A stretch of DNA of 64,000 bases, taken from NCBI GenBank assembly GCA_964247055.1, contig OZ176054.1, positions 11,718,001 through 11,782,000 on the forward strand, given 5' to 3'. Positions within the stretch are counted from its first letter, which is position 1; each line of letters opens with the position of its first letter. The notes under the pieces were generated by a model. It saw only the letters and a list, made by a program, of their open reading frames with translations, searched no databases and was not told where the DNA came from. The stretch comes from Paragordius varius (lineage: Eukaryota > Animalia > Nematomorpha). The position numbers and the translations under genes were made by a program. Positions 3,501 to 63,786 of the stretch are shown piece after piece.

Positions 3501-4881
3501 AACAAAATATTTTCATTTTTTAAGATTTATTAAACTTCAAAAAACAAGTATAAAAATTAGAATCAAACTAAAATAAAAACTTACGCCGTGCATTATTAAT
3601 ACTCCTAAGCCTTTGTCGCAATTTATTTTCAACGGCTGTTTGAAAGGCATGGGCTTCCCGTTGATCCGCAAAATTCAAAGCGGCTGGACACGTCTATATA
3701 TTATTTTAAAATAAAAATAGGGTTTTCAAAATTTATTAGAGCTTATTGAAAAAAACCTAATATATATATATATATATATATATATATATATATATGGTTT
3801 TGCAATAAATCAAGCAAAAAGGGGTTACTTTTTAAATATTTATAGAAAAATCACATAAAACATATAAAAACTTGATTAACAACTAAAATAAATAAAATTA
3901 ATTAATTTATAGAAATTTATGAAAAAAGACACGTAAAATTTGAAAAAACTTACATCGCAATCAAAGGTATGGAAAAAGGGAAGCGGGGTAAAATATTGAA
4001 ATTGAAGATATAACTCTTGTTCCCATACAATCTTTTCATTCTATTAATTAATTTATATAAACAGATAAATGGGTTAAAATCAAAAAGGCAGTTAATAAAA
4101 AAAACAATTTTAATCATAATTTTTTCTACATAACCTAAACAGTTAATTTAATAAATAAAAAGTGCAGATCGAAATTTTTATTATATCACAACCGTAACGG
4201 ATGCGGAATTCAAGGATAAAAATATGGTTTTCCATTATTAAAATTAATTGATATAATTGCAATCTATATGATATGAGTCATTTCATAGAAGATATTTAAT
4301 TAATTTATTTTGATTATCATTTCTATTTTTTACATACTTAACTTAATTGGCGGCTTTAAACATTCCAAAAAATTAAAATCGATCCTAAAAAGTAGTTTAA
4401 TTAATTTTTTTTTGAATAATAAATAATTATTGTTACTATATATTAAGGCGGATGATTAAGATTTGCACTTAAATGATTAACATCAAAAATAATACACTTT
4501 TAACCAAAATTTATAAGAAGTTATTACAAAAGATAAATATATATATTTTTAAAATCTTAAATTATTTTATATAGTACAATGCTTAATATGTATAAAAACC
4601 TTAAGATCCAAAATGCGTATGAAATAAGATTTTCGACTATTATCTTTAACAAAGCAGGCAACTCCACAACACCTTTTTTGCCATTCATTGTAATGCGGGG
4701 CTTCAGCTAAAAAAACTTGAACTACAGCTGTTGCTTGAGTCTTCGCAATAAATAAAGATAAAAATACCGAACATCGTCTCCCAAGAATTTTAAAAACTTT
4801 CTCATTTTCTTCATCAGTTAACAAAATCGAAGGAACATTCAAAGGGCCAGAATTAGATTTTTTAGCTACTGAACTCGGCAT
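547..4881 (-). CDS. WAS: Wiskott-Aldrich syndrome protein family member (WH1 + basic + CRIB); 3' part (poly-Pro/VCA) lies outside the window. Exons 4881-4768, 4740-4600, 4040-3954, 3693-3585, 2122-1840, 707-547
   Basis: Spliced translation gives WH1 motifs (GRRCSTQATAVVQ, CGVACFVKDNSRKSYFIR, VWEQELY, PFFHTF, LNFADQREA) and a CRIB motif KADIGIPTDFVHIQHVG split over two exons. All junctions are GT..AG with consistent phases. Confidence 0.93.
2620..2745. mobile_element. 126-bp palindromic MITE in WASP intron
   Basis: About 45-bp near-perfect inverted repeat TATATAGTAGGGGGCAATTTGCAACACACAGTAGTGTATGGAAAAAA around a short spacer. Confidence 0.8.
3087..3354. mobile_element. Family-A foldback MITE copy
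   Basis: AATTCAAATTCACCCTTGAACAA at left, shared core, right end TAAATGGTA followed by TA. Confidence 0.75.
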
Positions 4882-7566
4882 CTCAGTATCGATATCAGAT
4901 GAAACGGTGATATCCACGAAAATTAATCAAAATTTAAAAAGGTTTGCGACATAACACAGCGCAATCAAATAAATATTTTGATAAATTAATCTTTTCTAAT
5001 AGAGGTACAAAAACATTTATTTAGTTAAAGCCAGTCATTTAAAGTTTCTGTGGTAATTGCATTAAAAATGGCACGACAAAAGATGCCAATTTTTTTTTGT
5101 ATTTTGGCTTAAAACGAAAATATTTGCTGACATTATAAATTTTATTCAAAAACAACTTATTTTAGAAAGTCCAAAACTTTGCTTTGAAACTGTCTTTTTA
5201 ATATATACGTATAAACACCAAGAGAATGAATCTTTAATATATATATATTAAATTTTCAACAAATATTTGTTGAATCGTATTTCATGGAATTTTTAAGGTA
5301 ACGATATGAAAAATTTTTGCAACATAACTGTTAAAATAGGTTTCTCTAATGTTAAGGTTGGAGCATGTTTTATAAAACTTCAGGGCTATTAAATTTTAAC
5401 AAAATTTTTATTGTTTAGTTATTTTTTAATTAGCCCGCAATCGCCTGTGTTAAGAAAGATATCTGAAACAATATTGATTTTAAAGCACGTTTAAAAAAAT
5501 ATGGACGCAAATTCTTCAACAATAATCATTTAAACTTTATATCGATAGCAAACTATTTTTAACAAATTCTCAGCTCATTATGATGTTCATGATTTATATA
5601 GATATCCTTATTTTTTACCATTTCAACCAAACTAATACTATTAAATACACCTTTCCAATTTTTAAAAAATGCATACTTTTAATTCTTTTAGCAAAATTTT
5701 TAAAGTGCACTTCCTCCTATTTTTAGCTTGATGAAAACGATATAAAAATGATTATTAACGCATTCTTAATTTGATAATGCTGAACATTTTTATCACTTCA
5801 GAACAATTAAAGTTTTTTAAATTTAGGTCCAATGAATTTAAATCTATAAAAATTCATCGAAATCTAAAACACACATTAATTCTGAAGCGACAGAGTATTT
5901 ATAATCAAATTATTAGAAAAAATGTTCTTTCAATATCTAAAAGCGTTCGTATCACCGCTTCCATCGTGGATAAATACTTATATTATGTGCCTAATCAAAA
6001 TTTTGATAAAAATTAAAGTTTTCCAAAATTTTTAAAAAATATTTTTTTGTTGTTAAAAGTTAGCATATATAGTACCCTTTGTAAAAAATAACCCCATTAT
6101 AAAAGAAATGGGTAAAAAACTAAGAATGGTCTATTTTTAATTGGTTAATATTTTATTTTATGCTCGAATTATACATAAAACTTAGGATTGGAGCCTTTCG
6201 CGCAGTGGCGAAATTATAATCTCCGACTCCACTCTGATTCAGGCTAATGGCTCTTTCACTCAGGGCTTCCGTAAAAAGAGGCGCCTCAAGATTTATAATT
6301 AACAAAATTAATTTATGATATTTTAATAAATGTTGGATCAGGTTTAGAAAGTTCCTTTTTGTCATTATATTGAACGTTAAATTTTATAAAAAATATTATT
6401 CCCTAATTTCAAAATTTATTATATTTGGCATATGATTATAAACCTGTTTTCCAATTGAAAAATTCAGAGTTTTTTTACGTTTTATAAACTCATTTGGGGG
6501 AAGTTATAAGATTTCGTAATTTTTTTCCTAAACTTTAATTTTTATTAGTTTTCTTATTTTGCATAAACAAATTCATTATATTTTATTGAAGCGTACTTCA
6601 AACTATTTTAAAGGATGATGGAAACGATATAACGCTTAAAGATATATTACAACCTTTTTTTACCTAATTCGAAGATGTTGAACACTATTATAGGTTGAGA
6701 ATTCTAATTTGAAGGTTTTTTGCAAATTTTGGAAATTTTTGTAAAAAAGAGAATAATTCTGATTGAGAAATTAGCATTTAAATTATATAGAAAGTGTTAT
6801 ATTTTCTTAACCATTGATATCGTTTCCATCATGTTTAAAATAGTAAGAAGTATAATTCAAAATTTGCTAAAATTACATTTTTGAAAGTATGCATTTTTTA
6901 AAAAACATATTTAATTGATATTAAAATATAGCATATATTTAAAATTATTGCGCGATTTCGGAATTTTGCGTTTATTTTAAAACAATCCATTATAAAAGTG
7001 CCAAAAATTATGGAACCTTCATAGCCCATATCTAAAATTTAAAATTTTTAGAAATATTGTATTTTTATATGTAGTTTGTTATATTTTAGTGATAATTTTT
7101 AAAATAAAGTATTTAACACTTAACAAAAAATATATTAGAAAAAATTGAGCACATTTTGCAATATTATACGAAGCACTTACCATAAAAGTGTTAATTTTAA
7201 AAACTATTAATGGTTAAAACAAGTACCATGATAATTCTGTTATTTTATTTTCAGAACATATATATGAATATATATATATATATATATATATATATTATCA
7301 GGATAATCTTTTGTGGAAACTGTGTAATATACTCCGATGGTGTAAAAACAGGCAAAATATGATTTAATTTTATACTGCGTCAAAGTTCTAAATATCTGGT
7401 CACATTAGTCTACAGAAAGCATCATTATATTTTCTCGAGAGATATCATTTGCAAAATTTTTAAATTAAAAAATGTAACTGTTAAGAGCTAAATTTTATGT
7501 GAGTCGGATACGTTTTTGCAGATTGTGAAATATACCGAGTTGGTTGCTTTTATTAGTGAGTCTCTC

Positions 7567-62500: not shown

Positions 62501-63786
62501 TATAATTAAAATTAGTCAAAATATTTTTTTTGTTTTCAAAGATTTAGATCGAAAGCATTTAACAAAAAATTGTAATATTGTCAAACGAAATAAGATTTTT
62601 ATTATTTGTTGAATAAACTTTTTAGTATAAATAACATTTTTTATTTCTACTAATTTTATTTAAATATTTTTCAATAACTAAATTAAATTTCAAATGAAAA
62701 AAAATGATATATAACCAACCAAGTTGACGAGATCAGCGAAAAATGATAGCGTAATTTTTTGAAAGGGTGAACTTAAAGTTGTTATAGCAAGATTTGTTAA
62801 ATTATCTCCAAGCATTCTTAACTCTGGTGCAGAATTTAAATGCTTAATTAAATTTTCCCCTTCCAATAATGCATTATTAAAATTATTGGGTTGTTCTGGA
62901 GTGTTTATATGATTTCTATCAGTATTGATATCATTTGACATAAGTCCTTTTTGTAATTCATTTAATGTGCTCATATACAAAGCATTTTCATAACCTAACA
63001 AAGTAGGTTCATCATGAGTAATTTCAACAACATTTTTTTCGATCTTTTTGGTGTCCAAACTCAGTTGTTTTTGAGTGGTTTTATTATTAAACAACTCTTG
63101 AAAACAATCAACTACTGTTTCGGAATTATTATTATTAATGTTCAGGCTCCAACCATAAGTTAAAAGAACATCCCTTGGGACTTGGATAAAATCAAATAAA
63201 AGTGGATGACATATTCGATCACACAATTCGGAAAGTAAATTTTCGCTCCGATTATTATTAGTATAGATATAATGGGCAAAATTTGGACATAGCTCATATA
63301 TGGTTAAAACATTTGAGCATAAATTGCTTACTGTCAATAAGCTTGTTATATGAATATTATCATCATTTTTAAGATTTGAACTTATATTAGAAGTACAAAA
63401 ACGATGGATATGAAATTGTGTAGTTTCAAACCATATCTCATACATAGTTGTTGATAAGATTTGTGAGTTTTCCGCCCTTAAATGACATACATTAAAATTA
63501 AATAATAACCATAATACAATAATTATCTAATAAATTAAAACTTACTTTTTATTAGGGTCCACAATATTTGAATTAGACTGCTGAGGGCTAGTTTGAGCGA
63601 AGTTATTATCTAAAAGTTAAAATTTATATTTACCACCATTTTTACAAAGCGTGAAAACGGTGGAAAAGTAATATAGAAAAAGTTCTTTAAAGCACTTTAG
63701 TGCACATGAACATATTTCTTGAACTGTGCCATTCTTAGACACCTGACTGAGATAGCGTAATGTCCAAATCCAACATTCTTCAAATT
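59552..63786 (-). CDS. MON2: MON2 (Sec7-related endosome/Golgi scaffold), C-terminal part; exons 63786-63634, 63609-63546, 63476-62720, 62482-62324, 61912-61844, 61385-61261, 61077-60572, 60173-59975, 59903-59776, 59709-59552
   Basis: All ten exons join in phase. Segments EECWIWTL..EICSCALKCFKEL, YFRTNCLQML, KYPVP and IYSLVVDSLLSNSRQICSSLQTVL parallel the remembered MON2 C-terminus. The 5' end is outside the window. Confidence 0.75.
61462..61817. mobile_element. Family-A foldback MITE copy in MON2 intron
   Basis: TA-TACCATTTAC...GTAAATCGTA-TA, about six degenerate right-arm 21-bp units. Confidence 0.88.

Follow-up and report, generated by a model that had tools for sequence, protein, structure and literature searches.

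Candidate spliceosomal micro-introns of 22-31 nucleotides beside long introns in genes of the hairworm Paragordius varius

How short can a spliceosomal intron of an animal become in a gene that also holds introns of hundreds or thousands of nucleotides (nt)? This question is raised by a stretch of 64,000 nt from the hairworm Paragordius varius (assembly GCA_964247055.1, contig OZ176054.1, positions 11,718,001 to 11,782,000 of the forward strand), the whole of which is called the window here and supplies the positions given below. An earlier note, made from the letters alone, had listed 11 GT..AG segments of 22-31 nt in this window as introns. All 11 were found as described, with the listed lengths and places, and each reads GT..AG on its given strand. 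The explanation that we prefer, with a probability of roughly 0.8, is that these segments would be genuine spliceosomal introns of the U2-type GT-AG kind, reduced to a minimum length specific to the lineage. Judging from sequence, there is a high probability that the micro-intron class as such is real. It coexists with a class of 43-120 nt and with long introns full of dispersed repeats or of tandem copies of exon edges.

Evidence at individual genes

The 11 candidates, with the features that bear on each, are the following.

4741..4767, minus strand: 27-nt candidate, first coding intron of a WASP/N-WASP-like gene (GT..AG ends, alignment gap, WH1 domain)
7602..7625, plus strand: 24-nt candidate, first of three in a small gene of 105 codons at 7567-7952 (GT..AG ends, ATG-to-stop model, rarity of such chains)
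7696..7717, plus strand: 22-nt candidate, second in the same gene (GT..AG ends, gene model, chain rarity)
7870..7892, plus strand: 23-nt candidate, third in the same gene (GT..AG ends, gene model, chain rarity)
17107..17132, minus strand: 26-nt candidate, first intron of LACTB, a serine beta-lactamase-like protein (homology from the acceptor onwards, conserved position)
17367..17391, plus strand: 25-nt candidate, first intron of DNAJC8 (homology of exon 2, gene model, DNA contigs)
31181..31211, minus strand: 31-nt candidate in a Myb/SANT-like gene at 30942-31392 (GT..AG ends; an ATG exon joined to an exon with a weak Myb match)
36981..37005, minus strand: 25-nt candidate, first of three in NKAP (GT..AG ends, gene model, chain rarity)
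36877..36902, minus strand: 26-nt candidate, second in NKAP, splitting a codon (GT..AG ends, gene model, chain rarity)
36759..36784, minus strand: 26-nt candidate, third in NKAP (GT..AG ends, gene model, chain rarity)
63610..63633, minus strand: 24-nt candidate in MON2, followed by a 64-nt exon (sole in-frame GT-AG route)

The GC content of the segments is 9-24%, against 21-46% in the 12 exon bases on each side; that of the window ranges from 22 to 33% and is about 25% overall. Excision joins open frames at every one of the 11. Only 4741-4767 and 7602-7625 combine a length that is a multiple of three with the lack of an internal stop, and retention of either leaves the frame open.

In the WASP-like gene, the read-through of 4570-4926 was aligned with human WASP (9s9x_A) and N-WASP (6uhc_H), and the single gap corresponds exactly to the nine residues encoded by 4741-4767. 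The exon downstream of this segment carries a Pfam match to WH1. The segments 4741-4767 and 7602-7625 might instead remain unspliced and be translated as short insertions; transcripts that kept them would escape nonsense-mediated decay. In the former case, however, the product would contain a hydrophobic insert of nine residues in the middle of the WH1 core, at a point where human WASP and N-WASP have none, and the segment itself has GT..AG ends and a GC content of 22% compared with 46% in its flanks. We regard translation of these two segments as very unlikely.

LACTB provides evidence of another kind. In exon-by-exon alignment, the match to the beta-lactamase Pfam profile and to LACTB homologues begins at the acceptor of 17107-17132, and the catalytic Ser-x-x-Lys precedes the first Met of the acceptor-side frame. 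An upstream exon is therefore required, and an ATG exon 26 nt away provides the start. In the annotated LACTB gene of another animal (GCA_022045235.1), exon 1 ends in phase 0 after residue 114, which is the residue aligned to the end of the hairworm exon 1. The intron at that place is about 440 nt long and has the same position and phase as the hairworm segment of 26 nt; later intron positions in the two genes mostly coincide as well. With position and phase held in common, the 26-nt intron is an old one that has since shrunk. Word-index protein searches with exon 2 and with a neighbouring intronless ORF (open reading frame) found no match. The nearest LACTB homologue was a Logan contig of run SRR27980850, 57% identical over exon 2, whose 2,087 nt hold an uninterrupted ORF of 615 codons with AT-rich usage; the contig probably represents a transcript from some other AT-rich animal.

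In DNAJC8, the first residue of exon 2 (17392-17493) aligns to residue 27 of the human protein (7vpx_J). The frame of this exon is closed just upstream, and an ATG exon of 14 codons reaches the donor of 17367-17391; the exon 1 frame found no match among solved structures. LACTB and DNAJC8 stand head to head: the ATG of the former is at 17276 on the minus strand and that of the latter at 17325 on the plus strand, with only 48 nt between them. Such a gap implies either an extremely compact shared promoter with very short 5' untranslated regions (UTRs), or unseen leader exons or trans-splicing.

Contigs from three DNA runs, representing two individuals, pass ungapped through 17107-17132, 17367-17391 and the 43-nt second intron of DNAJC8, so that the LACTB and DNAJC8 segments are not assembly errors. 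The same contigs bear on the idea that the segments are excised from somatic DNA, in the style of the internal eliminated sequences of ciliates. The shortest eliminated sequences of Paramecium are similar in size to the hairworm segments, which speaks for this idea. Against it, the hairworm segments end in GT..AG and not in TA..TA, they are kept in all DNA contigs with no joined form at 17107-17132 or 17367-17391, and the LACTB segment occupies a conserved spliceosomal intron position. Elimination at the DNA level is extremely improbable.

The second individual, which accounts for two of the three runs, diverges by 2-3% in exons. Within 17165-17628, covered by one contig of 464 nt, all eight differences between the individuals fall at third codon positions of the modelled frames, and the coding frames in this interval are under selection. 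Although it carries the same species label, this second sample, with its exon differences almost only at third positions, is too diverged to align on most intergenic DNA of 14700-20699, which points to a highly diverse species or to a cryptic one.

Outside the window, the BiP gene on contig C4 has introns of 23, 28 and 69 nt, both micro-introns with GT..AG ends. The 23-nt intron interrupts the invariant motif GIDLGTTYS|C|VGV, and the 28-nt intron interrupts the HSP70 profile at about 87|90; the exons correspond to profile positions 13-87, 93-434 and 436-598. The complete model comprises 655 residues with a signal peptide and a C-terminal HDEL. Removal of micro-introns thus yields a protein colinear with its homologues in WASP-like, DNAJC8, LACTB and BiP. 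The first three of these lie in the window; for MON2, the Myb-like gene, the 7567-7952 gene and the N-terminus of NKAP, such colinearity across the junction was not demonstrated.

The models of these four genes draw on other features. In NKAP, three micro-introns link the ATG exon to conserved C-terminal exons in a full ATG-to-stop model. The second of them joins ..WGKSPKRII(D) to SDTEE.., which may resemble a motif of human NKAP; the exon 2 frame had no match among solved structures. In MON2, no single GT-AG intron keeps the frame, and only the succession of a 24-nt intron, a 64-nt exon and a 69-nt intron reaches the exon of 278 codons; retention of 63610-63633 introduces an in-frame stop. 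The upstream exon of the Myb-like gene has no Pfam match, and a 37-nt intron at 31181-31217 would keep the frame as well. The exons of the 7567-7952 gene have no family or homologue in Pfam, solved structures or the ESM Atlas; by eye, the product gives the impression of resembling the roadblock/LAMTOR3 fold family.

Length classes, order along genes and long introns

Intron lengths were also compiled from genes elsewhere in the genome. The resulting sample comprises 103 introns, 41 of them resolved in sequence and 62 with lengths estimated from profile coordinates, as is the case for the Ras and proteasome genes. It falls into the following classes.

19-31 nt: 20 introns
32-42 nt: 0 introns
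43-100 nt: 16 introns
More than 100 nt: 67 introns

With 20 introns at 19-31 nt and none at 32-42 nt, micro-introns form a discrete minority class (about 19% of the sample) that is not present in every gene. There are two short modes, at 19-31 nt and 43-120 nt, and a long tail; many introns measure 200-1000 nt, and the median of this biased sample of 103 is 344 nt. The claim that every multi-exon gene carries micro-introns is true of the seven window genes that were modelled. It does not extend to the analysed parts of a CCT gene (seven introns of 382-702 nt), of HSC70 (79 and 165 nt) or of another HSP70 gene (about 67-700 nt), which have none. Actin genes, with introns of about 78-118 nt, likewise lack them, and the introns of CCT, actin and HSP70 genes are mostly of 60-1200 nt. 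Ras-family genes show six profile-contiguous gaps of about 19-26 nt by coordinate estimate, three of them in one gene.

The order of intron lengths (nt) from the start of each gene, or of the part analysed, is as follows.

WASP-like gene: 27, 559, 260, about 1400, 1132
LACTB: 26, 762, 302, 643, 1133, 1179, about 2700
DNAJC8: 25, 43, 101, 1258, 70, 523, 344
NKAP: 25, 26, 26, 982, 1083
BiP: 23, 28, 69
MON2: 24, 69 (a pair that is not at the gene start)

Micro-introns precede the longer ones in all six genes of mixed classes (permutation P = 5e-5). In 12 of 17 genes no intron is shorter than the first (P = 0.0016); here an intron counts as first by its place in the analysed coding or domain part, and introns in UTRs lie outside the count. 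This 5' polarity points to a position-dependent constraint inside genes, as in Gyrodactylus (PMC4040987).

Five further introns, two of the second short class and three long ones, are needed for what follows.

17494..17536, plus strand: 43-nt second intron of DNAJC8 (sequence read and gene model; the DnaJ Pfam match starts in the next exon)
63477..63545, minus strand: 69-nt intron of MON2 (same in-frame route as its 24-nt neighbour)
9373..12099, ends approximate, minus strand: LACTB intron of about 2.7 kb with dispersed repeats (flanking exons and genome copy number)
17857..19114, plus strand: fourth intron of DNAJC8, 1,258 nt, with a high-copy stretch (junction and word depth)
34276..35358, minus strand: last intron of NKAP, 1,083 nt (Nkap_C profile positions 3-53 and 53-101 on either side)

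Micro-introns had been described as standing beside kilobase-scale introns filled with transposable elements. The LACTB intron of about 2.7 kb, which is made up almost wholly of dispersed repeats, agrees with this picture: for positions 323-2610 of the 2,651-nt query, the genome holds at least 211 matching places, with identities of 72-96%. The picture leaves out the class of 43-120 nt and the many introns of 200-1000 nt. An intron of 3.6 kb, given as the upper limit, was not located; profile continuity implies introns of about 3.0-3.3 kb in other genes. Depth spikes in the DNA runs mark high-copy stretches in two introns besides the 2.7-kb one, and at 18700-18899, within the fourth intron of DNAJC8, word depth is about ten times that of the surroundings. 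The last intron of NKAP contains three tandem copies of the 3' edge of the preceding exon, with its GT donor, spaced 150-200 nt apart. Degraded ORFs inside long introns gave no Pfam matches.

These observations can be read as the history that had been proposed at the outset, namely a compact ancestor whose introns were all minimal and whose genome was later re-expanded by transposons and tandem duplications, leaving the micro-introns as relics. The long introns examined do consist of dispersed repeats or tandem exon-edge copies, the 26-nt intron of LACTB is an old intron that shrank, and the assembly (44 contigs, 110.6 Mb) falls short of the 200-300 Mb reported for other nematomorphs (bioRxiv 10.1101/2024.06.11.598342). 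Random relics, however, would not cluster at the first positions of mixed-class genes, and the second short class at 43-120 nt needs a separate explanation. Re-expansion from such an ancestor is a tentative possibility that we consider somewhat unlikely.

Several repeats were also observed in passing. The interval 14900-15299, inside a LACTB intron, reaches a word depth of more than 1 million in the DNA runs and belongs to an extremely abundant repeat. A unit of 21 nt (GGGTGAATTTGAATTGTTCAA) occurs in arrays at 222, 10078, 23383, 29066, 29322 and 61665. An intronless ORF of 409 codons at 58086-59312 (plus strand) adjoins a mariner remnant at 56958-57257; it has no Pfam family and no exact protein record.

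Splice signals, machinery and the weight of chance

Splice sites were compared between 13 micro-introns and 18 longer introns. The 5' end of the micro-introns consists of GT, then A or T, then mostly T, and G at +5 occurs in one of the 13, compared with eight of the 18 longer introns. Within this small sample and against an AT-rich background, nine of the 13 have A at -9, positions -8 to -3 are T-rich, and TTAAY is found in five. The minimal signals would accordingly be GT followed by A or T and by T, with G almost never at +5, a likely branch-point A some 9 nt upstream of the exon, and a T-rich run leading to AG.

An inventory of small nuclear RNAs (snRNAs) and splicing factors, which had been put forward as a check, recovered a canonical U1 with ACUUACCUG, a canonical U2 with GUAGUA, and the SF1-HH domain of the branch-point protein SF1 at C5:3070526-3070684. 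With U1, U2 and SF1 all present, one major spliceosome for all sizes is the simplest reading, in agreement with the proposal that a single spliceosome handles both extremes. The micro-introns would then be removed by the ordinary major spliceosome through recognition across the intron, and this one machinery presumably removes all intron classes. The genome also contains a variant U1 (ACUUACUUG), 1.4 kb from the canonical copy; the two are at C6:604678-606419. Altogether, 17 matches to U1 and 46 to U2 were found over a wide range of scores; dozens of the U2 copies are diverged, and U2 variants cluster at C3:257000-527000.

A different view is that micro-introns, rather than being the lower tail of one distribution, make up a splicing class apart that is assembled by a route of its own. 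The gap at 32-42 nt, the confinement to first positions, the scarcity of G at +5 and the variant snRNAs (the ACUUACUUG U1 and diverged U2) would suit such a class. Together they would be compatible with a pathway close to the promoter or cap that depends only weakly on U1 and operates alongside ordinary splicing of the same transcripts. We consider a separate class unlikely.

The level of chance remains to be set against the preferred reading of shrunken U2-type introns. The real window and its reversed sequence were both scanned for GT..AG segments whose removal links open frames of 30 codons. Enrichment was seen only for chains of at least three micro-introns that give a frame of 300 nt or more starting with ATG: the real window has three such places, in NKAP, the Myb-like gene and the 7567-7952 gene, against 0, 1, 1 and 0 in four controls. 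Since controls reach one chain, one of the three in the window could be false.

The following points weigh against the preferred reading. The scan returned equal numbers of frame-joining candidates in real and reversed sequence, and with filters for splice-like ends and composition 76 candidates remained in the real window and 83 in the reversed one. Homology support at the junction is absent in five of the 11 claimed introns. The runs over 14700-20699 gave DNA only, and removal from messenger RNA is something that we infer. The intron sample is limited in size and favours conserved domains, and the splice-site comparison and the definition of a first intron carry the limits given with them above. 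Restoration of the frame, which was offered as evidence and does hold at all 11 segments, is no proof, because joining of frames is at chance level in DNA of about 25% GC; each intron needs independent evidence.

Part of the list may therefore be chance, the most exposed members being the three of the 7567-7952 gene, 31181-31211 of the Myb-like gene and 63610-63633 of MON2. The equal counts, the chains in controls, the lack of any family or homologue for the exons of 7567-7952 and the 37-nt alternative at 31181 all favour this suspicion. It has to contend with a class anchored through homology in WASP-like, LACTB, DNAJC8 and BiP, and with doubtful segments that have the same length, composition and end motifs as the anchored ones, and we find it clearly unlikely. 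Within the list, support is graded: 4741-4767 of the WASP-like gene, 17107-17132 of LACTB and 17367-17391 of DNAJC8 are well supported by homology as predicted introns; the three of NKAP, 63610-63633 of MON2 and 31181-31211 of the Myb-like gene are probable; and the three of the 7567-7952 gene, which belong to a self-consistent model only, are unverified candidates.

Nematomorph context and comparison with known systems

Contig C44 is a mitochondrial genome of 15,693 bp with cox1. It contains more than 35 perfect hairpins with arms of up to 208 nt and loops of 0-14 nt, and 19 of the 21 that were checked lie inside ORFs under the invertebrate mitochondrial code. Many long perfect inverted repeats within protein-coding genes are a mitochondrial hallmark of nematomorphs (PMC6649704), and the coding hairpins of C44 mark the animal as a member of Nematomorpha. 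A dicyemid is rejected on this mitochondrial evidence and on the intron median. An array of 72-nt repeats, each a hairpin, lies just upstream of cox1 at positions 6752-7451 of the same contig. The GC content of 25% is near the 26.9% of Gordionus (bioRxiv 10.1101/2023.06.26.546503). A search of the genome for Col_cuticle_N, the nematode cuticle collagen domain, gave no match; a control search of 14 genomes was equally blank, so the result is uninformative.

If the micro-introns are real, they have practical consequences. Gene finders whose lower limit for introns exceeds about 30 nt would fragment many genes of hairworms, and annotation or completeness (BUSCO) runs that disallow introns of 22-31 nt would truncate genes or miss them. 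Annotation of this kind may bear on the low completeness of nematomorph genomes, such as the 71.6% of Gordionus (bioRxiv 10.1101/2023.06.26.546503), and part of the reported gene loss and low BUSCO scores of nematomorphs could be an annotation artefact. Furthermore, the hairworm would add an ecdysozoan lineage to the animals with introns below 30 bp. A literature search that could not reach the main nematomorph genome paper found no published report of introns this short in Nematomorpha. The statement that such sizes lie far below the usual animal minimum, here in a parasitic animal, is upheld for canonical GT-AG introns.

The resemblance to dicyemids, ciliates and nucleomorphs that had been drawn is a partial one: sizes are similar in Dicyema and ciliates, but nearly all introns are tiny in the systems named, whereas they are a minority here. 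Paramecium and other ciliates have introns of 15-33 nt that are like those of the hairworm in length, AT-richness and canonical ends (PMC8997360; PMC13644364). Unlike the hairworm, these organisms are not animals, they have essentially only tiny introns, and they do not combine them with long repeat-filled introns in the same genes.

Among animals, a 2026 survey of 51 genomes found introns below 30 bp in two groups alone, myxobolid cnidarians and Dicyema, and predicted more such lineages (PMC13644364). Like Dicyema japonicum and the myxobolid Myxozoa, the hairworm is a parasite with canonical GT-AG introns of 20-30 nt at conserved positions, an example being the 26-nt intron of LACTB; the systems also have in common a 5' motif with little beyond GT and A, a conserved U2 and, as far as the small hairworm sample shows, weak A residues upstream of AG (PMC13644364). 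They differ in that the median intron of Dicyema and the myxobolids is 22-27 bp, while the hairworm sample has a median far above the 30 nt below which a lineage is classed as having ultra-short introns, and its micro class is concentrated at gene starts. Single genes in which tiny, short and kilobase introns stand together, unlike the arrangement in Dicyema and myxobolids, offer a natural system for studying minimum intron size and the differences between first and later introns.

The order of lengths along genes is matched most directly in parasitic flatworms. In Gyrodactylus salaris, intron lengths peak at about 32 and 58 bp, and the shorter peak belongs to ordinal positions 1-2 (PMC4040987); tapeworm intron lengths are described as bimodal too in the same paper, which cites Tsai et al. 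2013 for this. The hairworm resembles them in its two short modes with a long tail and a mean of several hundred bases, in the dominance of the shortest mode at positions 1-2, and in being a parasitic worm with a repeat-rich genome. It departs from them in that its short class, at 22-31 nt, reaches below the 30-nt mark and its second class lies at about 43-120 nt, values that come from a sample of 103 and not from a genome-wide annotation. As the hairworm is an ecdysozoan, its pattern arose independently of the flatworm one.

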